From NCBI RefSeq assembly GCF_006345805.1, contig NW_021828090.1, positions 1 to 36,568 on the forward strand: DNA of 36,568 bases. Direction: 5' to 3'. The position numbers and the translations under genes are program-made. How positions within the stretch are numbered: the first letter of the stretch is position 1; each line of letters begins with the position of its first letter. The notes beneath the pieces are model-generated. The model saw only the letters and a program-made list of their open reading frames with translations. It searched no databases and had not been told where the DNA came from. Shown here one piece after another: positions 3,530 through 34,765 of this stretch. Source of the stretch: Octopus sinensis (Eukaryota).

Positions 3530-4370
3530 TCTTCTCTATAAAAAATTCAGAACTCAAGACTCAGTTCATTAGTGTACATAAATAAATAAGTAATTCATGT
3601 TAGACTGAGCATAACTTAACACACTTTGGTCGAAATCGCCTTTTTGATCAATTAAGAAAATCTCTGTACAACGTTACTCGTGCAGAGGTTTCTGACGTAA
3701 TTAAACATTGTCCTTTCTGCCAATCCAAAAGGATGCTGGAGACTAAGCCACCAATCACGCCGATAATATCCAAAAACCCAAAAGATAGATATCTTGCGGA
3801 TTTGGTGGATCTAAGGCGTTATTCAGAACAAAATTCTGGATATTTTTGGGTATTTATTAGCAGTATTAAATCTCAGATTCTAGTTGTTATCGACTCGACT
3901 CTTTTTCAAATCCAACTTAAGAAGTCGCTATCTGAGAAAGCCAAATGGGTCACTGATTTCACAAATAAGCTCATGTTGCTTGATTCTCACTACGGATTTT
4001 TCGTGCTCAGAGTAAACCTCATGTTGCCAAGGCTTCTATATTTGCTGCGAACTTCAAACTGCTGAATACATGGGCCATGTAAAATTCTACAGTCGGACAA
4101 CGGGACAGAATTTAAAAATGCAGAAATTCAAAGTTTATGTCAAAGGTTCAGAATACTTCACATTCATGGAAGACCAAACAATCCTAGATCTCAGGTTATT
4201 CTACCAATTAATTTCTAGGGTATAATGGAATGTTTTAATCAAACGATAACAAGATCAATCGCCAAACTAATTGAAGAAAATGGGAATCATAATGAATGGA
4301 TGTCGATTCTACAGTATGCAGTTTACTGCTACAATACGACAATGCATTCGTTCTCGAATGAGACACCTTT
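3530..4370 (+). mobile_element. Ginger2/TDD-like (KRBA2-like) integrase-type transposase remnant with micro-introns
   Basis: HHCC motif (HNLTHFG...CPFC), YLADLVD, QSDNGTEF, RSQG; GT-AG introns 3574-3603, 3850-3876 and 4195-4218 restore the frame (FIS|TEH, FW|ILVVID, RSQ|GIM); frameshifted between about 3890 and 4070. Confidence 0.75.
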
Positions 4371-4373
4371 ATA

Positions 4374-4765
4374 AATAAGTAAAAAAGGAGATTTAAAAAA
4401 CGAAATCAAAAAATATCACAAAAAGTATAAATAAGTTTAAGAGGAGATTAAAAGAACAAAATCAAAAAATATCACAAAAAGTATAAATAAGTAAAAAAGG
4501 AGATTAAAAGAACAAAATCGAAAAGCATCACAAAATTATAAATAAGTAAAAAAGGATATTAAATGAACTAAATCGAAAAATATCACAAAAAGTATAAATG
4601 AGTAAAAAAGGAGTTTAAAAGAACAAAATCGAAAAATATCACAAAAATTATAAATAAGAAATAAGTAAAAATGGATATTAAATGAACTAAATCGAAAAAT
4701 ATCACAAAATGTATAAATAAGTAAAAAAAGTAGATTAAAGGAATAAAATCGAAAATATCACAAAA
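4374..4765. repeat. A-rich minisatellite, about 55-60 bp unit, about 7 copies
   Basis: Repeated aaaatcgaaaaatatcacaaaaagtataaataagtaaaaaaggagattaaaagaac; homologous shorter array at 21033-21265. Confidence 0.85.
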
Positions 4766-5005
4766 ATGATGAACTTTCAGATAATTAAATCATTAAAAAA
4801 AAATACATCTTGAATTATTCCTTCTGAATCCAATTAAGATAAAAAAAATAAAGTGTAGCAAATAAATGAGATAGCACCACAAAGTAAATCAACAGCGTGT
4901 TCACATGTGGCTTAATTTATTAGATATTAGGTTTACCATTAAAAATTAGGATAATTGACAATAATTAATGAAAAAAACTTTATTTTTATTACAAAACAGT
5001 TTTGA

Positions 5006-5257
5006 ATGTCAGTAATTATAGTAATTTTGTTACATTTGGTCATGTGGTTCATCAGTTGTTACAACTGTGGAGGCGCACAGAATACTCCTATAGAATTCAA
5101 GAAAAGAACCATTCAATCTTCCCAGCTGGAATTATCCAGACGACAATCCCAGGATCGCAGCCACCGATGGACGAAAGGCTTGAGCATTCTGCTTTCGGGC
5201 GATGTTGAGGAGAATCCAGGACCCCATCTAATCATACTTCAACTGAAGCGAATTTAA
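5006..5257 (+). CDS. 83-aa ORF: hydrophobic leader + 2A (StopGo) motif + first residues of an APE endonuclease
   Basis: LLSGDVEENPG|P fits the D(V/I)ExNPGP consensus; it is followed by HLIILQL, which in the paralogue at 21498 continues as LQLNINGIRGK...ALQETRL (APE N-terminus). Confidence 0.7.
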   Translation: MSVIIVILLHLVMWFISCYNCGGAQNTPIEFKKRTIQSSQLELSRRQSQDRSHRWTKGLSILLSGDVEENPGPHLIILQLKRI

Positions 5258-5416: not shown

Positions 5417-6430
5417 TTAATTCATTCTTTTTCTTTTTGAGCCATTCCTTAGCTCTCTAACTGCAATCTCTTGATGACCATCACCAATCTGATCCTCACT
5501 CCAGGATTGTTGTTCCATGGGCACGATTCCGTCGTCCTCAAATTGTAGAGATTTTCTTTGTAGAAAATGAATGACTTCACTAACATCACTCTCTTGAAAG
5601 TTCATCCTATTTCGGTGCTCCACTAACATGCTTTCAAGAGTTTTCTTTAGTACAATAGATTGAATATATGCCCTTGGAATAATATCCACACCCAAAAAAT
5701 CCATATATGATTTGTAGAATTTACTCACAATTCCCTCCCAAGTCATAACAATAGGGACAATTTTAACTTTCGCTTTGTATATTTGGGACAAATCTCCCGC
5801 GAGGAGGTCGTATTTATGAAGTTTTTCAATCTCAACCACCTTCAGCATCTCTTGAGAAGTGATTCCGACCTCTACTAAAGTAATCTCCCTTGTCCTTTTA
5901 TCGAAAACAAATATGTCCGGCTTGTTATGTTGTACTTTGATGTCTGTCATCAGCGTCGTATCGACTCTAATCTCAACATTCTCAGTTGTTACTATTGATT
6001 GGACTGAGTGAGTCTTCAGTTTCTTTGAATATGTGATTCCATATTTACGACACAGGTTTAAATGAAGACATCTCACCACCTCATTGTGACGGCGTATATA
6101 ATCACTATTTAACATTCTATTGCATCTCGTTGCCAAATGATCGACTGTTTTTTTGGCAGATTTACAATGACTGCAATTTGATCCTTTTTCCTCAAAGAAC
6201 AAATTTCGGTCCTGTAAAAGGCAATACAATGCTTCGGCTCTTGGACTATTATTTCCTTTTGCAAGCCAGCCCGACGATGATGCAGTATCAACATTTGAGT
6301 CTTTTAAACATTTGAATAACATAGAATGAAGAGATTTACTGTTAATTTTCGTCAATAACCATTCAATTTGAACATTTTTAAGTTTCCGTACATCCATGTC
6401 AGAGGAATTATCATCCAAGTTATACTTTAG
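5417..6430 (-). mobile_element. R4/Dong-like RLE non-LTR retrotransposon, 5'-truncated 3' fragment
   Basis: CSHC..TVDHLATRC knuckle, RRHN, KPDI, LVEVG, K..KY; colinear with the C-terminal third of the intact ORF at 13249-16767. Confidence 0.85.
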
Positions 6431-8776: not shown

Positions 8777-9610
8777 TGAACTTCCCCGTACTGAAATGTA
8801 GTCAGTTGCCTTCCTTCAAGAGGTTGGAATCTTTCCCAAAGAAAAAAAATGTCAAAACAGACATTTTATGACCCTTCTCCAACAGCAGGAGAATACAACA
8901 TGGGTGTGCTATAAAAGTGGGTGTCGAACATATAGTTCTATTAGAAACGGTATAAGAGAGTACTTTATTTTTAGGTACGTGGCTCGAAGGCACGAAAGTG
9001 AACTTACAGTCATGTATTCGCTTTATGTACATGTGGAGTTTCGACAGACACAGTATTTTATGGTGTCGGCGTCAACTGGAATGGAGTGGCCATACAATTT
9101 GTAATTGGTCTCACTCCCTGCGAGAGGTTTGCGCATTTTAGCAAATCGTCCGAACACAATGATTGGTATTAGTGTTCCATTAGATTGTTAGGTGGTATTG
9201 GCAAAGTTGTCCAAGTTGACGAATGCATGTTTTCTAAACGGAAAAACAATGCAGGATGGATTTTCCCTCAACAATGGGTGTTTGGGGGAATCTCTAGTGG
9301 AAGTAAAGACTGTTTCATCAAGATGGTTCCAGATCGCTCCAAAAGAACTCTAACCGCCGCAATACAGGAAAATATCGCACCGGAATCAGTGATACACACT
9401 GACAAATGGAAGGGTAATTCTACTTTATTCTTGCTAATAGGTTATTCAACGCCAGATCTCAATGCTCTTGCTTATGTGCACCTTACAGTTAATCACATTG
9501 GCCATAATTCGTTAATAAATTTGCAGACGAAATATTGTAGATCCGAGCAGAATTTTTATGGAGAAGGCAAGTGAGCCATTTAGACAACTCCTTCGATGAG
9601 CTAATAGATG
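8777..9610 (+). mobile_element. Merlin (IS1595-like) transposase remnant with a 27-nt intron
   Basis: VAFLQEVG...KC, VQVDECMF, QQWVFGG, IHTDKWK|GYS...HLTVNH; GT-AG intron 9414-9440 restores the frame. Confidence 0.8.
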
Positions 9611-10633: not shown

Positions 10634-11077
10634 CTATTCTATCGCCTTTTGATAAACGATGTTTGTCGTCCGTCCTTCCTTGGCATATATGAATAAATTT
10701 TCTCTTCTGCCTACCCTCGAGCATCCCACATACAGCTGTCCATGTGAAAAGCACTCACTCTCTAAAAATAACCCAACTACCTTTAATGACTGTCCCTGGG
10801 CCTTGTTTATTGTCATTGCAAAACTCATCCTCAAAGGAAATTGCAGCCTTTTAAATCTAAATGGTAATTCATCAGAAATTATCGGAATTCGTGGAATATA
10901 AACATCCTCACCTCTATACTTACCTGTTAATATCGTCGCCTCTATTACGTTAGCCATCAAATTTTTGATAACTAACCTCGTTCCGTTGCATAATTTAGGT
11001 GGCGCAAGATTTCGTAGTAAAACCACTGGAACGCCTATCTTTAACTTTAAGAGATGATTCGGCATTCCAGCCGGAGA
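10634..11077 (-). pseudogene. PIF1-like Helitron helicase C-terminal remnant
   Basis: LKLKIGVPVVLLRNL...LCNGTRL, QFPLRMSFAMTINKAQGQSL, FSHGQLYVGCSRV. Confidence 0.9.
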
Positions 11078-11684: not shown

Positions 11685-12580
11685 GAAGGTTTTAATAGGC
11701 CTCATCATGAATGTCGAGGACATTAACGTTGTTCATTTTAATCAAATGCAGAAAATAATTTTTTGATTTTTTGGCGGGAAGGTTTTAAGGACCTCATCAT
11801 GTAATTCGAGGACATCGTAGTTGTTCATTTTAACCAAAATGCAGAAAATTTTTTTTTAATTTTTTTTGGGGGGAAGGTTTTAAGGACCTCATCATGTAAG
11901 TCGAGGACATCGTAGTTGTTCATTTTGACCAAAATGCAGAAAACTTTTTTTTTAATTTTTTTTGGGGGGAAGGTTTTAAGGACCTCATCATGTAAGTCGA
12001 GGACATCGTAGTTGTTCATTTTAACCAAAATGCAGAAATTTTTTTTTTAATTTTTTTTGGGGGGAAGGTTTTAAGGACTTCATCATGTAAGTCGAGGACA
12101 TTGTAGTTGTTCATTTTAACCAAAATGCAGAAAATTTTTTTTTAATTTTTTTTGGGGGGAAGGTTTTAAGGACTTCATCATGTAAGTCGAGGACATTGTA
12201 GTTGTTCATTTTAACCAAAATGCAGAAAATTTTTTTTTAATTTTTTTTGGGGGGAAGGTCTTAAGGACTTCATCATGTAAGTCGAGGACATTGTAGTTGT
12301 TCATTTTAACCAAAATGCAGAAAATTTTTTTTTAATTTTTTTTGGGGGGAAGGTTTTAAGGACTTCATCATGTAAGTCGAGGACATTGTAGTTGTTCATT
12401 TTAACCAAAATGCAGAAAATTTTTTTTTAATTTTTTTTGGGGGGAAGGTTTTAAGGACTTCATCATGTAAGTCGAGGACATTGTAGTTGTTCATTTTAAC
12501 CAAAATGCAGAAAATTTTTTTTTAATTTTTTTTGGGGGGAAGGTTTTAAGGACCTCATCATGTAAGTCGAGGACATCGTA
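11685..12580. repeat. 95-bp minisatellite, about 9.5 copies
   Basis: gaagg anchor at 11778, 11873, 11969, 12064, 12159, 12254, 12349, 12444 and 12539; near-identical units, with one diverged unit from about 11687. Confidence 0.95.
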
Positions 12581-12670: not shown

Positions 12671-12714
12671 AAAATTGCAATTGGTTGCCCTAATAATGAC
12701 AGAATCTCCGATAT
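12671..12714 (-). repeat. 44-bp perfect inverted copy of the hAT left-end/flank junction (13008-13051)
   Basis: aaaattgcaattggttgccctaataatgacagaatctccgatat is the exact reverse complement of 13008-13051. Confidence 0.9.
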
Positions 12715-12847: not shown

Positions 12848-13029
12848 GTGGCTTTTGACGCTGAAGATGAAAACGCGGAAATTTGTTATCAAACAAACTC
12901 GGATAATATTTCATCTGAAAATTGTGAATCTGTTTTGAAAAACATCACAAAAGCAGGCGAGAAAATGAAAAACAAAATAAAATGGAGCCACGATGAAGAA
13001 AATATAAATATCGGAGATTCTGTCATTAT
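12848..13029 (+). mobile_element. Ginger2/TDD-like C-terminal fragment, left part (interrupted by hAT copy A)
   Basis: ...NINIGDSVII; rejoins in frame with 19978 onward after removing the hAT and one TSD. Confidence 0.6.
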
Positions 13030-13237
13030 TAGGGCAACCAATTGCAATTTTTTGCAATTAAATATAATTTAATTAAAATTCGATAAATAATAAAGTAATG
13101 AATAGACATTAATTTTAATTATATTTTTATTCGATTTAAATTTGCAATTTTTTGTAGTCATTTTACAATTTTTTGCAATTTTTTTAAATTAAAAAAAAAA
13201 TTTTTTATTAAAAAATAATATAATTATAAGTAAAAGA

Positions 13238-16200
13238 AACTACAATTTTTGTTTAGTGGTGTAAGGATGGTTGGTTTTTCTCAGTCTGGAAAAGTCATTT
13301 CCATGGACGCATCCACAGAATACCAAGTAAATGACGCTCAAGAAAATGTGGATTTGTCTGTTCATGGCTGTCTTAATGCCCCTGTCAAATACAATGAAAC
13401 TCAGCAGCTCTCGTCAACTTTGTTATCCTTAAAAGCTATTTGTGAGTCTATTGATTCGTCCAACCCAGGAGAGTGGATGTCATCTCTTTTGAACTATGTC
13501 AAAGATCGTCTCAAGCGAGTACCTAGGGGAGGGTGGCCACTTATGGCCAGCTATTTTAATTCTAAATTTGGTAAGAAAAAATCGATATTCGAATTGAAAA
13601 AACTTGCTACTACTTTCCGCGGAAATAATGAAATCACCAAAACTGGACATAATATGAATAGAAAATTACCTGATTTGACACTGTACAACAAAATTTTTGA
13701 AGAATTATTAATTCAAATTGATCAAAATAAATCAATACCAATCGAAGAAAGGAAGCAAACAAGAAAGATTCAATCTCAGCATGTAAATCATGAAGTGATT
13801 GAAATGATTAATAAAGCCCTAATTGAATACACGTCGAATAACATTCCTGCAAGTATTGAGGATATTTCGTCTTTGATATACTCAGCACAATGTGTATATC
13901 AACAGATATCAAGTAAATTGACATTCAAGTCGAATTGGAAACAAAAAATCCAAAATAAAATTGAATCTTTGATGGAGAATGATCGGTTAATATCAAAGCA
14001 TTTTATGTCCACCACTAAAGATGAGGAACGGAAGAAAGCAGTAGACATTCTCTGCTCCTACAATTATAAGAAGTCTAAAAGGGGGGAGTTTGAGAGAATA
14101 TCGTCTACAATAAATGATCAAATCAAAATTCTAAACAAAAAGTTATCAGTTTCAGATTCAAGAAGGCAATATGGAATAGATAATAGAAACTTCGAGTTGA
14201 ACAGAAGATCGTTCTACAGAAAGCTGAATCCCAATTCTGATAACAAACAAATTGCTGGTTTTGACTCGTCTGAGTGTCTCAAGTTTTGGGGTGATGTTTG
14301 GAAGAAAAGGGATAAAACTGATTTGGGCCTTGGAGTGAACAAAAGAGTAACTGGAGTGGAAGATAATGCACCTGACGTTAGCGACGAGTTTATATCAAAC
14401 TTAATTGAGTACCTTCCTAATTGGAAGGCTCCGGGATGTGATGCTGTGTACAATTTCTTTATCAAAAAGCTGGACTCTCTTCACAAATTTCTTTTCCAAG
14501 TGATCAGAAATATTATTAATGGTGTCAGTCAACCACAAGGATGGTTTTACACTGGAATTACATTTTTAATCCCAAAGAAAGCAAACTCTGTTGATCCGAA
14601 GGACCTTAGACCAATTACATGCATGCCGTGCTTATATAAATTGGTCACAAAATGTGTGAACGAAAAAATCGCTGTATATGCTGATACTTACGATCTGATA
14701 ACGGAGTTCCAGTTGGGATCTAAACGCCATTGCCAAGGAGCAAAGGAATTAGCGCTTCTAAATAGATGCGTTAATGAAGTTTATGGAAACAAATTATTAT
14801 GTGCATGGATCGACGTAAAGAAAGCTTTTGACTCAGTGAGTCACGAATTTCTTTTTGAAGTTTTGGAAAACTCAGGACTACCTAAATGGATAACGAAATT
14901 TATGATGTCAATAATTCCTAACTGGAGAGTGTCGTTAAGATTAGGAAAAGAGCTGCTTGGAACAGTTAATATTGATCGTGGTATACTCCAAGGTGACTCA
15001 CTGTCACCACAGTTATTTGTATTGGTCTTGGATCCATTAAGCAGGATTTTATCTTTAAAATATCCGAGTATGTCAATCAATACTGGTGAAGACAAGTCCT
15101 TAACCTTTTCTACCAATCATTTTCTATTCATCGATGATTTGAAGCTTTTTGCTCAGAAGGAAGAGACACTGGCACGCATGATGGAGGATGTGAACATTTA
15201 CTTTAAACTGGCTGGTTTGGAGAAGAATTTTGAGAAATCAGCGACAAATTGTTATTTGTTGAGGAATGAAGCTACATTAATGGATGGACTAGATAGCTAT
15301 CGCTATCTGGGGGTGCTAGAAGACAGATGCAGTAATGCTCTTAAAGAGGATGTACTCAAAAATATTAAAGAAGAAATGCAAAAGCGTATTGGAAGACTAT
15401 CGGAAACTAAACTAAATGCAGTCAATCTATTTAGAGCAATTAATGAGCATGCTCTATCGCTGATTAACTATTATATCGGTCTACTCGATCTGGAACCATC
15501 TTGTTTCGAAGAAATGGACAAGTTTGTCAGAAAGCTGTTGGCTGATTTGAAAATTCACATGAAGCCAGCCTGTAAAGAAAGACTGTATCTGCCAAGAGAT
15601 ACACTTGGAAGGGGACTTGTATCAGTTGCCTTTAAGGCGGAAAAAATGCTGTTGGACTTCAAAACCAATTTGGAAAGGCGAAAGTTAATCTCCTTGAGAA
15701 AAGCAGCAATTTTGTGGGCCGAACAGAAAAGGAAAACCCATATGGCCACAATCACAGAATTCTTGCATTGTAAATATGGAACAACCACACTCGATGAGAT
15801 TGCTAAATCACTACGTGACTTGCAGATAGAGTCACTGTTGCTTAGTATTAAAAAGAAAAGGTTGCATTCGAAGCTATTTGAGTCGCTTGAAAATAATACT
15901 TTTGATATCCCAACATCTTCAACATGGCTAAAGAAAGGGAATATATCTCCTAAATCTGAGGCAATGTTCTCTTTTCTTCAAGACAGAAACGTCTTTTTCA
16001 GAAACTCTGATGAAAAATGCCCACATTGTAAATCCTCGCCTAAAACCGTGGACCATCTTGCGACGCGATGCAGTAGAATGCTAAATTCAGATTATACCAG
16101 AAGGCATAACGAGATTGTGAGGTGTGTTCACATGCACTTGTGTCGGAGATTTGGAATGAAGAAGTCCAAGAGACTGAAAAACCACTCCGTGCAGTGTATA

Positions 16201-16804
16201 ATGTCGAATAGCTCTGCGGAAATTCGGGTCGATACTACAATTCCAACTGAACTAAAAATACAATATAACAAGCCTGATATATTCCTGTATGACAAGAAGG
16301 AAAATTTGATATGGATCATTGAAGTGGGTGTTACCTCGATAGATAATTTGAAATCGGTGGAAGTGGAAAAAATGCATAAATACGACATTCTAGCCAGTGA
16401 ATTACAATTAATTCACAAGGCTAAGGTAAAGATTGTACCGATTGTCCTCACGTGGGATGGGATAGTCTCTACATTCTTCAGAAAATATATGGACCTTCTT
16501 AAAATCAAAGAAAGTGTGCAAGCATACATCCAGACTGTTGGTTTGAAAAAAACAATGGAAAGCATGATAGTAGAACACAAATTTGGCTTCGAAAATATGT
16601 CTACCTCAGGTAACTCATTTGACGAAGGACGGAAATCGGTGAAGAGACGGCGAGATTCTGTAGTTTCCGCCGATGAAGGAAACAACTCCGAAGTGGGAAC
16701 AGATAGCGGGAAGAGGATTCCGAGAGTAAACTTGGCGGAGCAAACTAATATGGAAAAGGAAAGTTAATTAGTTAATTAATTATTTTATCTTTCATTGTTA
16801 AAAA

Positions 16805-16840
<36 letters not shown>
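13238..16840 (+). mobile_element. R4/Dong-like RLE non-LTR retrotransposon, apparently complete
   Basis: TSD (A)TAAGTAAAAG(A) at 13226-13237 and 16840-16851; AATAAA then a 34-nt poly(A) at 16807-16840; the empty site is visible in copy B near 29000-29030. Confidence 0.95.
13249..16767 (+). CDS. Intact RT + CCHC + restriction-like endonuclease polyprotein (first ATG at 13267)
   Basis: WKAPGCD, RPITC, DVKKAFDSV, GILQGDSLSP, FIDDLKL, YRYLG, CPHC..DHL..C, RRHN, KPDI, IIEVG, K..KY; no internal stops in 1172 codons. Confidence 0.95.
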   Translation: MFSGVRMVGFSQSGKVISMDASTEYQVNDAQENVDLSVHGCLNAPVKYNETQQLSSTLLSLKAICESIDSSNPGEWMSSLLNYVKDRLKRVPRGGWPLMASYFNSKFGKKKSIFELKKLATTFRGNNEITKTGHNMNRKLPDLTLYNKIFEELLIQIDQNKSIPIEERKQTRKIQSQHVNHEVIEMINKALIEYTSNNIPASIEDISSLIYSAQCVYQQISSKLTFKSNWKQKIQNKIESLMENDRLISKHFMSTTKDEERKKAVDILCSYNYKKSKRGEFERISSTINDQIKILNKKLSVSDSRRQYGIDNRNFELNRRSFYRKLNPNSDNKQIAGFDSSECLKFWGDVWKKRDKTDLGLGVNKRVTGVEDNAPDVSDEFISNLIEYLPNWKAPGCDAVYNFFIKKLDSLHKFLFQVIRNIINGVSQPQGWFYTGITFLIPKKANSVDPKDLRPITCMPCLYKLVTKCVNEKIAVYADTYDLITEFQLGSKRHCQGAKELALLNRCVNEVYGNKLLCAWIDVKKAFDSVSHEFLFEVLENSGLPKWITKFMMSIIPNWRVSLRLGKELLGTVNIDRGILQGDSLSPQLFVLVLDPLSRILSLKYPSMSINTGEDKSLTFSTNHFLFIDDLKLFAQKEETLARMMEDVNIYFKLAGLEKNFEKSATNCYLLRNEATLMDGLDSYRYLGVLEDRCSNALKEDVLKNIKEEMQKRIGRLSETKLNAVNLFRAINEHALSLINYYIGLLDLEPSCFEEMDKFVRKLLADLKIHMKPACKERLYLPRDTLGRGLVSVAFKAEKMLLDFKTNLERRKLISLRKAAILWAEQKRKTHMATITEFLHCKYGTTTLDEIAKSLRDLQIESLLLSIKKKRLHSKLFESLENNTFDIPTSSTWLKKGNISPKSEAMFSFLQDRNVFFRNSDEKCPHCKSSPKTVDHLATRCSRMLNSDYTRRHNEIVRCVHMHLCRRFGMKKSKRLKNHSVQCIMSNSSAEIRVDTTIPTELKIQYNKPDIFLYDKKENLIWIIEVGVTSIDNLKSVEVEKMHKYDILASELQLIHKAKVKIVPIVLTWDGIVSTFFRKYMDLLKIKESVQAYIQTVGLKKTMESMIVEHKFGFENMSTSGNSFDEGRKSVKRRRDSVVSADEGNNSEVGTDSGKRIPRVNLAEQTNMEKES

Positions 16841-16842
<2 letters not shown>

Positions 16843-17060
16843 AGTAAAAGATTATTAAAACGTGTTTTAGTTGTTTGTTGTAATGGGTAAAAGGACAGTG
16901 TCACAGAAAATTTCATTTTATGCAAAGAAATTCCCCGAGTTTGTTATTGACAGTGAAGGGAATTTATTTTGCTCCAATTGCTCAACTGTTGTACGGTGTG
17001 ACACAAAATTTTTTGTTGATGCGCACCGTTCTTCAAAAAAACATTTAAAAGCACACAGTA

Positions 17061-18522
17061 CAGTGGGCGCAAAAAAAATCCGGTTTTCTTATTTTTCGAA
17101 TTTTTCAATATAAATTTTATATTATTTTTTTTTAATTTAGTATCATTTTGAAATGTAAATCGAGTATGTTTTTAATTTTAAGTATTTTTATTTTTCATAG
17201 AGATATCTTGAATTTAATTTTAAAATGCGCAAAAAAAACTCGGTTTTTTTAATTATTGAGTCTTTTATTCTCAAAAATTTGAAATTGTCATTTTTGTTGT
17301 TGTTGGATGTCGTGTATTTCAGAAATTGTGAAAGGACAAATTATTCAACTTTATTTCCTTAATTGGACATATAAACAAATTTCAGAAGAAGTAGAAATTC
17401 CCAGATCAACAGTGGGAGATTACATACGTAAATACAAAAAATATGGAACAACACAGAGACTGTCCGGTTCTGGAAGACCTAGGACATTAAATAATGATGA
17501 TATAAATACTTTATTGACGCTTGTTTCTGACAATCCGAAAAAATCTTCCCGTTGCCTGTCAAAGGATCTTCATTCTTTGACAGGAAAAATCGTCTCAAAA
17601 CGAACAATTGGGAATTATCTGAAACAAAAGGAAATATATTCACGTGTGTGTCAAAAAAAACCGTATCTGTCTAAAATTAATATCGAAAAACGATATTCCT
17701 TGTCAAAAAATTTATCGCACTGAATATGACGTCATGGAAATCAACTATTTTTAGTGATGAATGCTGTTTCGAAATTTTTAATCACAAAAAAAAGGAATTT
17801 TGTTATAGGAAAAACAACACACGTCTAGAAAAATCGCACTTATCTCCACTGTTAAATTTGGAGGGGGAAAAATAATGGTGTGGGGATGTTTCGGGTATTA
17901 TGGAGTAGGCAATCTAGTATTTATAAATGGAACTATGAACTCAGCAACTTATGTGAACATATTATCAAATAATCTGTGGGAGTCCGCTGCGAAAATGTGC
18001 TTGAATGAATTCATATTCCAACAAGACATGGCTCCTCCACACACATCAAAGATCACGAAAGATTTCTTTGCCGAAAGAAGCGTCAAACTATTGGATTGGG
18101 CACCGCAATCGCCAGATTTAAATCCAATAGAACATCTTTGGGCATATATTAAAAGTAAATTGTACGAAAATCCTCCAAAAAATATGCATGAGCTGAAAGA
18201 TAAAATTATCGAAATTTGGGAAAATATGCCGAAAGATCTAATACAGAAACTCATAAACAGCATGCCGAGAAGGGTGTACGATGTTTTTATGGCTAAAGGA
18301 CGGCATATTAAATATTAATTTGACATTTTTTTAAAAAACCGGGTTTTTTTTGCGCATTGTAAATTTAATTGGAAATATCTCTTGAAAAAAATAATGAAAA
18401 TAATCAAAATAAAAAAATAAGAGTTACTTTTCACTAAAATTTAAGATTAAAAAAAAATATTATATCGCACAATATAAAAAAATAGAGAAATTAGAAAACC
18501 GGATTTTTTTTTGCGCCCACTG
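17061..18522 (+). mobile_element. Tc1-family transposon (1462 bp), IR/DR-type ends
   Basis: TA duplication (17059-60, 18523-24); TIR CAGTGGGCGCAAAAAAAATCCGGTTTTCT; inner repeats of the binding motif at about 17225-17250 and 18332-18358. Confidence 0.97.
17307..18318 (+). CDS. Tc1 DD34E transposase with a single 1-nt frameshift near 17722
   Basis: HTH region with SGRP, FSDE, FQQD(34)E, SPDLNPIEHLW; restoring one G (TGG AAT ATG ACG TCA TGG) gives the canonical H-W-x4-W; no introns. Confidence 0.9.
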
Positions 18523-19977
18523 TATTTCTTTGAATTTAAATTTATAGAATGGACAAATTCATCTCAGAGTTCACAAACATTTCTTTCGGCGATAACGGAT
18601 ACTCGAAAGGATTGGGGGATCAAAGTAACACAAGCGTTTTTGGAGGCAAACATACCAATTTATAAAATCAGACATCCTTCCCTCATACGGCTTTTTGAGC
18701 AGGAAACATATCCTTTGCCATCTGAATCATCTTGAAGGTTAAATGTTAAAGAAATATCAAAATATAAAATTAATACCATTCAGACTCATTTACTGTTGTT
18801 TTTTTTAAGTTATTCAATAGTGGGGAATGTGTTTTTTTTTGTTTGTGATGAAGCCCAATCAATGGAACTCGTTTTTTAATTACTTTGATTGGGAAAATCT
18901 CCACTCCAAAAAATCTTCATTTAGTATCGTGTACCAATCTATATTATCCGCCTACTACTTCAACAATTTGTGTTGAGGTGGACAAAGTAATAAAGAAATT
19001 TTCTATTGAACGTGAAAATTTTATATTATTCGTTACAGATGGGGCGAGATATATGACCAGTGGTATATATAAATAAATTTAATTTTAGCTGGGGCATCAA
19101 TGAAATTGATATACCAAAATCTTTTCCACGTGACTTGCGTGTCACATTTATTGCACAACTGTGCTCTAAAGATTAAGGCATACTTCGCAGATGTTGATGA
19201 ATTGATTTCGTCTATAAAGGCTGCCACAGTCAAAAACAAGAGACGTTTGGAGATGTTTTCACGAATCGGAAATCCACCCGAAGTTGTGGTTACAAGATGG
19301 GGAAGCTGGCTAAAAGCAGCAAAATATTACTCCCAGAATCTTCCAGAAATTATTAAAATCGTATCTGAATTTGAAGGAGATGGAGTTTTAATACAAAATG
19401 TTTTAGTTTTTAATTATTTTAGGCAAAAAAATCAGTGAATAATCCTACGTTGTTTCCAAGCTTAACCCAAATCAGTTCAAATTATTTGGGATTAATTGAA
19501 ATGATTTCAAATACTGAATTGCTTGATTACTCCATTGCAACAGCTTATGGTGATCTAAACACCCTAGACTTTACATCAGATCCATGCGACATAAAATCCT
19601 ATATATCAAAAAAGCTTGAGAAATCAGGAATACTAAGTATTCTTGAATTCTCAAATAAGAATCTATCGCCAGAAGTTTATTCACATCTCAGAAAATGTAG
19701 CGCAAGTTCAGCATCTATCGAAAGGGCAATATCTCTTTTGACGAAAATTCTTAGTAAAGAGAGGAACTTTAAACCTGAAAATGTTCAGGAATATTTGATT
19801 TCCTATTACAATAAATAATTTCGTTAATTTTTTGCATAATGTAATGTTTACAATTAAAAAAAATTATTTTTGCAATTTTTTACAATTTTTAAAATTCATT
19901 TTTGCAATTTTTTACAATTTTTAAAATTCATTTTTGCAATTTTTTTTATTAAAAAGTGCAATTTTTTGGTTGCCCTA

Positions 19978-20090
19978 GTCATTATTAAACATGACATCGA
20001 TGCTAATACCAACAATAGAAGGCTTCCCTTATTTGATAATGTCGATACAACAAAATATAAAATTATCAAAGAAAATAATTACAAATATTC
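19978..20090 (+). mobile_element. Ginger2/TDD-like C-terminal fragment, right part
   Basis: Rejoined sequence reads IGDSVIIKHDIDANTNNRRLPL, resembling the C-terminal IGD.V.I region of the other Ginger2-like copies. Confidence 0.55.
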
Positions 20091-20838: not shown

Positions 20839-21032
20839 TTCTTTCTCGATCGCGTCGGCTTCCCGTCCATGAAGTTTAGTTTCGGATTACTTTTTATGTA
20901 TAAAAATGAAATAGGTAAAAAATCGAAGGAGTTCACCATTCGAAATTATCTAAAATTGAATAATTTATTAAATTTATAATAAATTTCAAATAAATAATAA
21001 ATTTGCAATATTAAAATTATTTTTTTAGAAAT

Positions 21033-21265
21033 AAGTAAATGAAAGAAATTAAAGGAACTAAATCTAAAAATATCACAAAAAGTATAAATAAGTAAAAAAA
21101 GGAGATTAAAAGAACAAAATCGAAAAGCATCACAAAAATTATAAATAAGAAATAAGTAAAAATGGATATTAAATGAACTAAATCGAAAAATATCGCAAAA
21201 AGTATAAATAAGTAAAAAAAAAAGTAGATTAAAGGAATAAAATCGAAAAATATCACAAAAATGAT
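21033..21265. repeat. A-rich minisatellite, paralogue of 4374-4765 (about 4 units)
   Basis: Same aaatcgaaaaatatcacaaaaagtataaataagtaaaaaa unit. Confidence 0.8.
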
Positions 21266-21497
21266 GAACTTTCAGATAATTAAATCATTAAACGAAATAC
21301 ATCTTAATTATTCCTTCTGAATCCAATTAGGATAAAAAATAAAATGTAGCAAAAAATTAAGAGAGCACCACAAAGTAAATCAACAGCGTGTTCACACGTG
21401 GCTTAATTTATTAGGTATTAGGTTTGCCATTAAAAATTAAGATAATTGACAATAATTAATGAAAAAAACTTTATTTTTTATTACAAACCAGTTTTGA

Positions 21498-22050
21498 ATG
21501 TCAGTAATTATAGTAATTTTGTCACGTTGCATCATGTGGTTCACCAGTTGTTACAACTCTGAAGGCGCACAGAATTCGAGAAAGCACTCTTCCCAGCTGG
21601 AATTATCCAGACGACAATCCCAGGATCTCAGCCCCCGATGGACGGAAGGCTTGAGCATTCTGCTTTCGGGCAATGTTGAGGAAAATTCAGGACCCTATCT
21701 AATCATACTCCAACTGAACATCAATGGAATAAGAGGGAAAGTTCTTGAATTACGGACATCCCTCAAAAAACATAACATCAATGTAGCTGCCTTGCAAGAA
21801 ACCAGATTAACACCTTCCTCTATTACTCCCTCATTCCGGGATATAACTGTATCCGCTTATGCCGGTTAAACCGACTTGGCGAGGGCCTTCTGTTTATTAT
21901 CAAAAACGGTTTTATTATCACTATACGGACTCCACGGATGACCCCCTTCCGTTCCGCACATGCATTGGGTCCAGAGTTTAACATCGGGAAAAGCTGAGAA
22001 AAATCTTAAGGATTGTTAGAATCACCTAATTAATTACCCTAATTAACTCA
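21498..22050 (+). mobile_element. Internally deleted Ingi/Vingi-like element: leader + degenerate 2A + APE N-terminus joined to the 3' tail
   Basis: GNVEENSGP then LQLNINGIRGK...VAALQETRL; from about 21945 the DNA matches 1545-1650. Confidence 0.75.
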
Positions 22051-23868: not shown

Positions 23869-25217
23869 ATGGACGGTAAATTTTTTTCTAGTTAACATAA
23901 TCTAAAGATACTGAAGAATACTATTCAGACGAATCATCAGAGACCTGTTCTTTCAAAGACTACCCAAACAAAAATTTCGATACAAAACCAACGAGCGGAC
24001 CATCCTGTTCAGAGGAAGACATTCAGTCAAATTATTCCGATTATGACAACGAGAGGTTTCTATATTCTGCGTAATATCATCACAGTGTCTGTTCTGGAAT
24101 AAAACGAGTCAAAGAACTCGAATTTGTCACATCTACAGGCATTTTCTTATCATAACAAACACAGGAAAGAGAATTCCTCCCAAAATCATTAACGAAAATA
24201 CAAATCAACTGGAAAATCTTAAATCTAAATCAACACGTTTTCAAATTGGTATTTTTTATTGATATAACAGAATTGTACAACAAATTGTTGAAATGTCGAA
24301 TGAAAGTTCAGCCAATTCTGGCAAATGTAAATTCTCTGCCACAGAAACATTTATTTAGTCAAATTGAGGGGTGTGGGGACCTCGAGTTGACCCAACAAAT
24401 TGAATCCAGTTTTTAGATTTTTTAATTTTTTTAGTTAGGGATAAACTAAACTGTTTTACCGATTCATTTGAAAGTATTTTGAATTCAGTTTGTTCGTCTT
24501 TTTTGGAAAAAGACGTTGAAATTGCCGGAAATGAGTTTCTTGAGGATTTTGATGTTAAATTGAAGGATTGTCGGTTAAAAAATAATCATTATTTTGTAGA
24601 AATGGAATTCTGCAAGATTGATTTGATAAGACAAGACTTTCAGTGGCTAAAATGCCGAAAAAAGACTTTTCCAATTTCGAAAAATCTCCAGTAGTCCAAA
24701 TTGAACAAATCATGTCAGATCCGACTCGTTTAATCAGGAAAACTCAAATGAATCGTTCAAATTGTCGTGTAGTGGGACAGATTGACCAGTCAATGCCTTT
24801 GACACGTGTCCAAGACTTGAGAAACGACGGGACTCTTTATCAATATGACACAGAGATGTTTGACGATTCGGATTTCTATCAGAGACAGCTTAGTGATTTT
24901 ATCAAAAAGAAGACGGAAGGGTCTTTGGATTGTTCACAAGTTGATAAGTTTGTGTGTTGGTGATGAGATAGGAATTATTTGGATATGCGTAGTCGAGCTC
25001 AATATAAAATGGATAGACCTGTGGATGTGAGAGCTACAAAGTCGAGAAAAATAAGGTTTGGAGGTTTTGTTGTTTTTAGATATACGGTTATTAAGAAACT
25101 TGCTGGATTTTTTGCGCCTGTCGATACTAGTACGTGGACGGATGAATCAATGTTGGTTTTTTTTAATTTTTTGTTAGGAATGAACTTTTTGGCTCGTTGT
25201 TTGGAAGGACGGTTTAG
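23869..25217 (+). CDS. AATF: AATF/Che-1/Bfr2 (SSU processome factor); 10 exons, 370 codons, in-frame TGA at codon 197
   Basis: Introns 23876-23907, 24056-24085, 24139-24164 (GC-AG), 24249-24270, 24409-24434, 24574-24599, 24948-24971, 25056-25079 and 25152-25177 give a 1113-nt frame: acidic N-terminus, QIELYNKLLKCRMKVQ..N.LP, RNGILQD*FDKTRL, FDDSDFYQRQL, DVRATKSRKIRY..KL..F.AP...LFGSLFG. Confidence 0.9.
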
Positions 25218-28617: not shown

Positions 28618-28807
28618 TATTTGAATATATCGGAGAATGATTTGTTTATAGTGAAGTCGAATGTTATACTCCTTCATAACAGAGAGATGTTCGTGGCATA
28701 TTAAACAATAAGCTTTCTGCTTTAATTCATCTTTCGCAAAAAATATTTCATTTCCCATAATTTGTTAAATACACGACATTGGCGATCAACTTTTCTTTTC
28801 ATATTAG

Positions 28808-30656
28808 TAGGGCAACCAATTGCAATTTTTTGCAATTAAATATAATTTAATTAAAATTCGATAAATAATAAAGTAATGAATAGACATTAATTTTAATTAT
28901 ATTTTTATTCGATTTAAATTTGCAATTTTTTGCAATTTTTTGTAGTCATTTTACAATTTTTTGCAATTTTTTTAAATTAAAAAAAAAATTTTTTTATTAA
29001 AAAATAATATAATTATAAGTAAAAGATTATTAAAACGTGTTTTAGTTGTTTGTTGTAATGGGTAAAAGGACAGTGTCACAGAAAATTTCATTTTATGCAA
29101 AGAAATTCCCCGAGTTTGTTATTGACAGTGAAGGGAATTTATTTTGCTCCAATTGCTCAACTGTTGTACGGTGTGACACAAAATTTTTTGTTGATGCGCA
29201 CCGTTCTTCAAAAAAACATTTAAAAGCACACAGTATTTCTTTGAATTTAAATTTATAGAATGGACAAATTCATCTCAGAGTTCACAAACATTTCTTTCGG
29301 CGATAACGGATACTCGAAAGGATTGGGGGATCAAAGTAACACAAGCGTTTTTGGAGGCAAACATACCAATTTATAAAATCAGACATCCTTCCCTCATACG
29401 GCTTTTTGAGCAGGAAACATATCCTTTGCCATCTGAATCATCTTGCAGGTTAAATGTTAAAGAAATATCAAAATATAAAATTAATACCATTCAGACTCAT
29501 TTACTGTTGTTTTTTTTAAGTTATTCAATAGTGGGGAATGTGTTTTTTTTGTTTGTGATGAAGCCCAAATCAATGGAACTCGTTTTTTAATTACTTTGAT
29601 TGGGAAAATCTCCACTCCAAAAAATCTTCATTTAGTATCGTGTACCAATCTATATTATCCGCCTACTACTTCAACAATTTGTGTTGAGGTGGACAAAGTA
29701 ATAAAGAAATTTTCTATTGAACGTGAAAATTTTATATTATTCGTTACAGATGGGGCGAGATATATGACCAGTGGTATATATAAATAAATTTAATTTTAGC
29801 TGGGGCATCAATGAAATTGATATACCAAAATCTTTTCCACGTGACTTGCGTGTCACATTTATTGCACAACTGTGCTCTAAAGATTAAGGCATACTTCGCA
29901 GATGTTGATGAATTGATTTCGTCTATAAAGGCTGCCACAGTCAAAAACAAGAGACGTTTGGAGATGTTTTCACGAATCGGAAATCCACCCGAAGTTGTGG
30001 TTACAAGATGGGGAAGCTGGCTAAAAGCAGCAAAATATTACTCCCAGAATCTTCCAGAAATTATTAAAATCGTATCTGAATTTGAAGGAGATGGAGTTTT
30101 AATACAAAATGTTTTAGTTTTTAATTATTTTAGGCAAAAAAATCAGTGAATAATCCTACGTTGTTTCCAAGCTTAACCCAAATCAGTTCAAATTATTTGG
30201 GATTAATTGAAATGATTTCAAATACTGAATTGCTTGATTACTCCATTGCAACAGCTTATGGTGATCTAAACACCCTAGACTTTACATCAGATCCATGCGA
30301 CATAAAATCCTATATATCAAAAAAGCTTGAGAAATCAGGAATACTAAGTATTCTTGAATTCTCAAATAAGAATCTATCGCCAGAAGTTTATTCACATCTC
30401 AGAAAATGTAGCGCAAGTTCAGCATCTATCGAAAGGGCAATATCTCTTTTGACGAAAATTCTTAGTAAAGAGAGGAACTTTAAACCTGAAAATGTTCAGG
30501 AATATTTGATTTCCTATTACAATAAATAATTTCGTTAATTTTTTGCATAATGTAATGTTTACAATTAAAAAAAATTATTTTTGCAATTTTTTACAATTTT
30601 TAAAATTCATTTTTGCAATTTTTTTTATTAAAAAGTGCAATTTTTTGGTTGCCCTA
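28808..30656 (+). mobile_element. CGGBP1-like hAT transposon, copy B, intact (1849 bp)
   Basis: 12-bp TIR TAGGGCAACCAA; 8-bp TSD CATATTAG (28800-28807, 30657-30664); subterminal TTGCAATTTTTT repeats at both ends. Confidence 0.97.
29058..30529 (+). CDS. Intact spliced 456-aa hAT-type transposase (CGGBP1-like)
   Basis: Introns 29233-29258, 29506-29531, 29774-29799 and 30111-30133 give a 1371-nt open frame; CSNC..H..H zinc finger, VCDE, VTDG, CxxH, TRW, SIERAIS. Confidence 0.9.
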
Positions 30657-30943
30657 CATATTAGGAATAGCAACAAACAAAAATTTAATGTTAATGCTGA
30701 TAAGTTTTTTTCGAATTAAATCTTGCGAAATAGTTTATTTTTTTAATTAAAGTTTTTATTTGAGTTAATTATTAAAATATTAATTGAATATCTCGAAAGG
30801 GGTGCATCGTCCTGGGACGAAGATGTCGCCAGGGGGACAAGTTTTGATGGTTCTTTTCCGGTGAGTATTAGGTACCCCCTGAGCGTTTCCAAATGCGTCT
30901 GAATTGCAAGATTCAAGCGAGTTGGTGAACCACATAACGCCAC

Positions 30944-34694: not shown

Positions 34695-34765
34695 TGCATC
34701 TGCCGGGAATCGAACCCGGTTCGCTCGCATGGGAAGCGAACATGATACCATTACACCACAGATGC
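34695..34765 (-). tRNA. tRNA-Gly(CCC)
   Basis: GCATCTG acceptor stem, TGGTGTAATGG A box, anticodon arm TTCGC-TTCCCAT-GCGAG, GGTTCGATTCC B box; 71 nt, no intron. Confidence 0.9.

Follow-up and report, generated by a model that had tools for sequence, protein, structure and literature searches.

A probably autonomous CGGBP1-like hAT transposon whose transposase gene is divided by four introns of 23-26 nt

Mobile hAT transposons with a CGGBP-like DNA-binding region were described as the hAT-19 subclass by Yellan, Yang and Hughes in 2021 (e.g., hAT-19_Crp and hAT-13_LCh; PMC8097297), and occur in insects, crustaceans, cnidarians, a ctenophore, a planarian, reptiles, and the coelacanth (PMC8097297). 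The source of the human protein CGGBP1, which gets no Pfam domain (PMC8097297), is taken to be hAT19 (RepeatMasker class hAT-hAT19; PMC9004415). Ultrashort introns have been described in the Myxobolidae, with medians of 22-27 bp, and in Dicyema japonicum (PMC13644364, PMC6736024). Here we analyze a stretch of 36,568 nucleotides (nt), contig NW_021828090.1 of the Octopus sinensis assembly GCF_006345805.1 (hereafter the window), in which a 1849-bp hAT element (copy 1) lies at positions 28808-30656. With a probability of roughly 85%, the element is an intact autonomous hAT from the clade with a CGGBP1-like N-terminus, residing in a host with introns of around 22-26 nt. This is in essence what an earlier note on this DNA had proposed, namely an autonomous and recently mobile hAT with a CGGBP1-like N-terminus and four micro-introns to be removed; its structural claims were verified and its functional reading gained independent support. 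The element is a fairly ordinary new addition to the known CGGBP1-related hAT group.

The element is bounded by perfect 12-bp terminal inverted repeats (TIRs), TAGGGCAACCAA and its reverse complement TTGGTTGCCCTA, and by a perfect 8-bp target site duplication (TSD), CATATTAG, on both sides (Table 1). We checked these TIRs and TSDs in this copy and in a second one found in the window (copy 2, see below), and they are as the earlier note had reported. The 12-mer TAGGGCAACCAA is found five times in the window, against a chance expectation of 0.13: once at each end of either copy and once in a junction fragment. Its terminus is compatible with the YARNG type of hAT ends. Inside the TIRs, the motif TGCAATTTTT has 14 sites in the window, all within the two copies and none outside, clustered in about 165 bp from the 5' end and about 75 bp from the 3' end. 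The 5' subterminal region also includes a 10-bp tandem array. By analogy with the subterminal motif matches of the published hAT-19 proteins, some of which were found to have AT-rich motifs in insects (PMC8097297), the TGCAATTTTT repeats are probably transposase binding sites.

The coding blocks between these ends shift through frames 1, 0, 2, 1, and 0 in the three-frame translation. When four GT...AG segments of 26, 26, 26, and 23 nt are removed, the spliced coding sequence is open from the ATG at 29058 to the TAA at 30527-30529 and encodes 456 amino acids (aa), which confirms both the segments and the translation reported earlier. All four segments are 3n+2 long and each moves the frame by +2, as required; outside them, neither stops nor frameshifts interrupt the 1371-nt coding sequence. 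Translation of the unspliced mRNA gives 67 residues, i.e., a zinc-finger peptide only, and the retention of any single intron results in an early stop. Hence, expression of the transposase would depend on micro-intron splicing. The segments are identical in both copies, begin with GTA or GTT, end with TAG, and often have a TTAAT-like stretch about 8-12 nt upstream of the AG. Aligned with 17 intronless relatives, the spliced protein begins at the start that the family conserves and stays collinear with them; junctions 2, 3, and 4 are free of indels. The GT...AG borders, the host-typical length, and a frame collinear with homologues are what one expects of spliceosomal (U2-type) micro-introns, and we read the four segments as such from the sequence.

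One might instead regard the four segments as small insertions in a decaying pseudogene, in which case the element would be a dead relic moved, if at all, by other copies. Copy 2 does show the family decaying through small indels, and a Tc1-like element nested in that copy has plain frameshifts rather than introns. However, random insertions would have to begin with GT and end with AG in all four cases (a chance of about (1/256)^4), fall every time in the intron size class of the host, and restore the frame exactly, with no indel relative to the relatives at conserved motifs, within a coding sequence that is otherwise undamaged. We therefore consider the pseudogene very improbable and retain the reading of an intact gene split by introns.

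Table 1. Coordinates of the element and of its second copy. Positions refer to the window.
Feature	Position	Strand	Description
Left TSD copy	28800..28807	.	CATATTAG, 8 bp
5' TIR	28808..28819	+	TAGGGCAACCAA; same TIR in the relative with a 43%-identical transposase
5' subterminal region	28820..28972	+	TGCAATTTTT at 28821, 28921, 28931, and 28962, plus TACAATTTTT variants; presumed binding sites
Exon 1 (aa 1-58)	29058..29232	+	Conserved start; C2H2 zinc finger C30, C33, H48, H54
Intron 1, 26 nt	29233..29258	+	GTATTT...TATAG; site of the Tc1-like insertion in copy 2
Exon 2 (~aa 59-140)	29259..29505	+	Second half of the CGGBP-like DNA-binding region (EANIPIYK, PLPSES)
Intron 2, 26 nt	29506..29531	+	GTTGTT...AATAG
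Exon 3	29532..29773	+	First part of the RNase H-like core; D150 (VCDEAQ), D214 (FVTDGARYM)
Intron 3, 26 nt	29774..29799	+	Junction within conserved ARYMTS/AG (family form DAARYMT(S)AG)
Exon 4	29800..30110	+	CxxH (C238-H241), TRWGSW (R291/W292), start of the all-alpha insertion domain
Intron 4, 23 nt	30111..30133	+	Junction within conserved LIQN/AK (family form LV..AK)
Exon 5	30134..30529	+	Rest of the insertion domain; C-terminal helix with catalytic E425 (SSASIERAIS); TAA stop 30527-30529
3' subterminal region	30578..30644	+	TGCAATTTTT at 30582, 30614, and 30636; one additional 32-bp unit in copy 2
3' TIR	30645..30656	-	TTGGTTGCCCTA as read on the + strand
Right TSD copy	30657..30664	.	CATATTAG
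Copy 2	13030..19977	+	hAT segments 13030-13237, 16852-17060, 18525-19977

The window also contains a host gene, similar to AATF/Che-1, at about 23900-25208 on the + strand, with five GT-AG introns of 24-26 nt (24409-24434, 24574-24599, 24948-24971, 25056-25079, and 25152-25177). A complete TRAUB domain (Pfam positions 1-83 of 83, E 1.2e-19) appears only once these segments are removed, and the spliced C-terminus aligns to an independent AATF protein across two of the five junctions. Since this gene carries five introns of 24-26 nt, the micro-introns of the transposon are of the kind that is normal in the host, and the transposase gene would be split by introns of 23-26 nt because the host genome uses them everywhere. 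Outside animals, introns this short are known from ciliates and microsporidia. The window has standard stop-codon usage and an animal-like set of transposable elements (TEs), comprising an R2-like long interspersed nuclear element (LINE), Tc1, a Helitron helicase fragment, and hATs. The ultrashort-intron genome is most likely that of an animal, and probably of a dicyemid or a myxobolid.

The introns of the element and of the AATF-like gene are like those of the Myxobolidae and D. japonicum in size class (23-26 nt in the window), in their reduced splice signals (GTa/GTt...AG), and in the short A-containing stretch before the AG. The published work covers host genes (PMC13644364, PMC6736024), whereas the window shows such introns in a transposase gene. 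In open-access text we found no description of transposases with introns below 30 nt in dicyemids or myxozoans. In G+C content (34.6%) and in its high TE density, the window resembles D. japonicum (36.7% G+C, 48.9% repeats; PMC6736024) somewhat more than the myxozoans of PMC13644364, which is circumstantial. The AATF-like gene has an in-frame TGA at 24619-24621, where the AATF protein used for comparison (P0075) has a conserved Trp (CRNGILQD-stop-FDKTR vs. HRQSTLNHWYARTR). A nonsense allele, an error of sequencing, or read-through might account for it; the rest of the gene model is clean. A recoding of TGA to Trp was rejected, as the long open reading frames (ORFs) of the LINE and of the hAT have no in-frame TGA and encode Trp as TGG.

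The assignment of the spliced protein to the hAT superfamily is firm, since it draws on Pfam matches, on a motif alignment with Hermes, and on the fold search of a relative's model. The hAT-associated Pfam domain DUF659 is matched with E 2.4e-8, and in 18 of the 18 aligned family members. The C-terminal dimerization domain Dimer_Tnp_hAT (PF05699) has an E of 0.17 (12.1 bits) here and gives weak matches in 11 of 18 relatives (best E 0.0017), all below the cut-off. The CxxC-x14-H-x5-H finger is invariant in the family; it does not match Pfam zf-BED and has a weak similarity to U1-type and Spin-doc fingers. A phmmer search against the PDB had the Hermes transposase as sole match, pairing FVTDGARYM with FVTDRGANV (second catalytic Asp), CVSHLLHN with CSSHLLSN (CxxH), TRWGS with TRWNS, and SSASIERAISL with SSAASERTFSL (catalytic Glu). 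D150, the first Asp, is located where the first beta-strand ends. The motifs listed in the earlier note (zinc finger, D..D..E, CxxH, and TRW, the latter at T290-R291-W292) are thus all in place (Table 1).

An AlphaFold model was made for the closest relative (P0001, 43% identical) from an alignment of 38 sequences. With a pLDDT of 90.9, it arranges its strands and helices as an RNase H does, and an all-alpha insertion and one last helix come after them. When searched against the PDB with Foldseek, its top 12 matches were all Hermes (best E 5.6e-10, TM around 0.5), followed by ISCth4, retroviral integrases, and mariner. The window protein is accordingly predicted to have the defining hAT architecture, an RNase H-like DDE core with an all-alpha insertion, CxxH, and RW. 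Hermes of Musca domestica (PDB 2bw3, 4d1q, 6dww, and 8edg) shares with it the fold, the second Asp, CxxH, RW, the catalytic Glu, and 8-bp TSDs. Yet Hermes has 612 aa, is intronless, and is only about 13% identical to the 456-aa window protein, in which the all-alpha insertion is about half as long. Introns do occur in some hATs, such as maize Ac with four and medaka Tol2 with three, where they have the usual length of tens to hundreds of nt. Like the window element, Ac and Tol2 need the host to splice their transposase, but the introns are here of 23-26 nt.

The N-terminal part of about 140 residues is what ties the element to CGGBP1. It has an invariant L-x-C-x2-C...H-x5-H finger and conserved (A/S)(D/N)IPL and PLPSE motifs. 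When its profile was compared with human CGGBP1 (sequence entered by hand) using hhalign, the two matched over 106 columns with a probability of 97.4% (E 1.4e-11); the region of CGGBP1 that aligns is its N-terminal 110 residues or so, with the C2H2 finger and the 'EANIPL' helix region. Seven residues are conserved in DNA-binding CGGBPs, i.e., a Leu two positions before the finger, two Cys, two His, and two Pro (PMC8097297). All seven are present: L28, C30, C33, H48, H54, and P95 are invariant in the family and P116 is conserved in at least 90% of it. At the level of sequence, this bipartite domain is homologous to CGGBP1. The element shares with the CGGBP-like hATs of the hAT-19 subclass the N-terminal finger and Hermes-type DNA-binding region, the putative bound subterminal motifs, and the patchy distribution across eukaryotes, which makes it a putative member of that subclass on the basis of the published residues and of the CGGBP1 alignment. 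The suggestion of the earlier note that the element could be a free-living counterpart of CGGBP1 is correct in kind, as the hhalign match and the seven residues attest, but it is not new, because the hAT-19 group was published in 2021 (PMC8097297). The existing picture of the origin of CGGBP1 is unchanged, as mobile CGGBP-type hATs have been known since then.

The CGGBP1-like N-terminus raises the question of whether the locus is a domesticated host gene, CGGBP-like or ZBED-like and provided with introns, rather than a mobile element, all the more as introns were taken as one sign of CGGBP host genes (PMC8097297). Human CGGBP1 has 167 aa, has neither catalytic domain nor TIRs, and is a conserved single copy in amniotes, and CGGBPs are mostly truncated to less than 200 aa, whereas the window element is a full transposon. 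It keeps the complete set of DDE, CxxH, and RW residues, subterminal repeat arrays at both ends, perfect TIRs, and an 8-bp TSD, and there is a second insertion elsewhere with a different TSD. We found neither the loss of TIRs and catalytic domain nor the single immobile locus that would mark a domesticated gene. Hence, domestication seems to us the least probable of the alternatives, slightly behind even the pseudogene, and we continue with the element as a transposon.

The second insertion, copy 2, spans about 6.9 kb because it harbors two nested elements, one non-LTR (LTR, long terminal repeat) and one Tc1-like. Its own TSD is perfect, GTCATTAT at 13022-13029 and 19978-19985, and its flanks are unrelated to those of copy 1. 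Without the nested elements, the copies differ by one substitution in around 1.84 kb and by a few indels: two of subterminal repeat units (10 bp and 32 bp) and three of 1 bp in homopolymers. The sole substitution is a nonsense mutation in copy 2 (Cys121 to stop), where two 1-bp indels (a +1/-1 frameshift patch) also scramble VCDEAQ, with loss of D150. The 'near-identical copy' of the earlier note is therefore near-identical in having a single substitution, but it is dead and doubly interrupted. Since each copy has its own TSD (CATATTAG vs. GTCATTAT) and unrelated flanks, they are independent insertions, as previously claimed, and an assembly duplication is ruled out. The near identity of the copies at two sites suggests a very recent transposition, in agreement with the recent activity that had been proposed.

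It could also be that the element is intact but immobile and that gene conversion or segmental duplication made the copies alike. There are only two of them in the window, 9-15 kb apart and on the same strand, and an inverted duplicate of 44 bp from a junction of copy 2 (see below) indicates local rearrangement. Such processes fit poorly with an identity that ends exactly at the TIRs, with two nested insertions private to copy 2, and above all with a perfect 8-bp TSD of its own and unrelated flanks for each copy, which are the signature of transposition. We regard immobility as unlikely, if less so than the two alternatives above, and favor recent transposition of the element.

Several points weigh against the reading of an intact, autonomous, and mobile CGGBP1-like hAT. 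With copy 2 dead, the window offers a single intact copy, and current mobility is deduced from the footprints of two past insertions. The removal of the introns by host splicing is predicted. Junction 1 lies in a variable linker, where the borders rest on the frame and on the host intron size class only. Among the comparisons, the DUF659 score (34.2 bits) falls slightly short of the 34.7 that Pfam requires, Hermes is matched weakly when sequences are compared directly (phmmer E 0.04), and the structure model is that of a 43%-identical relative and not of the window protein. The CGGBP1 sequence in the hhalign comparison (UniProt Q9UFW8, 167 aa) was entered by hand and not copied from a database record, and the protein database search with the N-terminal profile, which covered 556 word-sharing candidates, gave four unnamed matches and no named CGGBP1. 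Finally, transposase activity and DNA binding are predicted properties.

If these predictions hold, the life cycle of the element would be as follows. Its single transposase gene would be transcribed, and the host spliceosome would excise the four GT-AG micro-introns, whose structure is deduced from the relatives. Judging from the alignment and from the fold of the relative, the resulting 456-aa transposase would combine a C2H2 finger and helical DNA-binding region with a DDE core that is split by a short all-alpha insertion and completed by a C-terminal helix bearing the Glu. Its expected targets on the DNA are the TAGGGCAACCAA ends and the subterminal TGCAATTTTT repeats. Excision would proceed by the hAT route, with a hairpin on the flank, and reinsertion by an 8-bp staggered cut; 8-bp duplications are observed at two independent sites.

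To place the element in its family, we searched for related proteins and found 70 relatives with 35-44% identity, most of them of 450-465 aa and encoded by single ORFs on contigs of about 2 kb. More than 60 relatives can be aligned with the 456-aa protein over its whole length; they are deemed intronless because they were called as single ORFs. No near-identical pieces of the transposase were found in the protein collection searched. In an exhaustive profile search, an E of 1e-3 or less was reached by 8503 cluster representatives, and 1e-30 or less by 1077; full-length clade members have around 455-500 aa. The size of the 'compact (1.85 kb) autonomous family' put forward in the earlier note is confirmed, but compactness is the norm of the clade and no peculiarity of this element.

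One relative from marine metagenomes (P0012, transposase 43% identical) could be delimited on contigs that are chimeric across copies. Its element is of 2032 bp on L007 (1463-3494) and is also present on L010 (107-2108) and L008 (329-2360), and the flanks differ between contigs, which shows that it is mobile. It has an identical TIR, with a terminal 13 bp of TAGGGCAACCAAA, and different subterminal repeats (AAGTCAAAA / AGGTCAAA). The right end of the closest relative is ...GCAATTTTTTGCAGCCCTA, with GCAATTTTT subterminal repeats. Across the clade, the TIR appears to be more conserved than the internal binding sites. A scan of the metagenomes for the TIR pattern returned at least 119 loci, which we rejected as chance matches because none encodes the transposase (tblastn). 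The only named relative (P0068) is a partial protein of the microsporidian Cucumispora dikerogammari, a parasite of amphipods. Given the abundance of hAT-19 in crustaceans (PMC8097297), it may result from host contamination or from a transfer between host and parasite.

The introns set the window element apart from this family: the relatives retrieved at full length are all single ORFs, whereas the window copy has four ultrashort introns. None of the partial relatives has micro-introns at these positions (P0053 is a frameshifted copy and P0058 has a gap of about 350 bp elsewhere), and the nested Tc1-like transposase has none, only its two 1-bp frameshifts. As the full-length relatives are intronless and the partial ones share no intron position, the four micro-introns were probably gained on the branch of the element, a branch that is long (around 43% identity to the closest relatives) and seen through a protein collection built largely by intron-blind gene calling, in which intron-containing relatives would be under-represented. 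Intron gain within a mobile element is likely the one mildly novel point of this locus. A more elaborate scenario is that the micro-introns were gained in an ultrashort-intron lineage, that they leave the element 'host-locked', that the 67-aa zinc-finger peptide of the unspliced mRNA could act as a repressor, and that the family offers datable intron gains. We propose it tentatively and incline to doubt it. If true, the element would be expressible only where introns of 23-26 nt can be spliced, and intron gain could be dated in an animal lineage that shares introns below 30 bp with, as far as is known, just one other.

The value of the locus is that it shows a clean and apparently active hAT at home in a genome whose introns are among the shortest known in eukaryotes. 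With 1.85 kb and a transposase of 456 aa, it is a compact candidate tool. It is also a natural reporter for micro-intron splicing, as all four introns must go for function. And, since the relatives are intronless, it may be a case of a mobile gene that has acquired introns.

The elements nested in copy 2 are of interest in themselves. The non-LTR element (13238-16839, 3.6 kb) lies in the 5' untranslated region of copy 2, with a 41-nt poly(A) and a 12-bp TSD, ATAAGTAAAAGA. Its ORF of 1172 aa is intact, encoding RVT_1 and a C-terminal restriction-endonuclease-like region, and the insertion looks very recent; a diverged relative of this element is found at around 5417-6418 on the - strand. The Tc1-like element (17061-18522, 1462 bp) has TIRs of about 29 bp, CAGTGGGCGCAAAAAAAATCCGGTTTTCT, a TA TSD, and a transposase (HTH_Tnp_Tc3_2 and DDE_3) broken by two 1-bp frameshifts; its insertion target was the TA of the GTA that opens intron 1 of copy 2. 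Taken together, the insertions suggest that several TE families are currently active in the genome. Near copy 2, positions 12671-12714 (- strand) are a perfect 44-bp inverted duplicate of its left junction (13008-13051), with 22 bp of flank and the first 22 bp of the element. The arms are 293 bp apart and could stem from aberrant hAT transposition, fold-back repair, or an assembly artefact. Directly upstream of this duplicate is a 95-bp satellite (11685-12580) with 9.4 tandem copies of 96% identity.

Except for the AATF-like gene, nearly all of the window derives from TEs. It includes a fragment of an IS1595/ISXO2-like DDE transposase (9185-9574, + strand) and a C-terminal fragment of a Helitron-type Pif1 helicase (10634-11065, - strand). 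A segment of about 700 bp is repeated with 89% identity at 4370-5247 and 21025-21718; it starts with a 56-bp A-rich tandem array and is probably the tail of another repeat family. The sole Rfam match in the window is a tRNA-Gly(CCC) at 34695-34765 (- strand). An interstitial telomere-like repeat of the TTAGGG type, (AACCCT)7, is located at 2296-2338.

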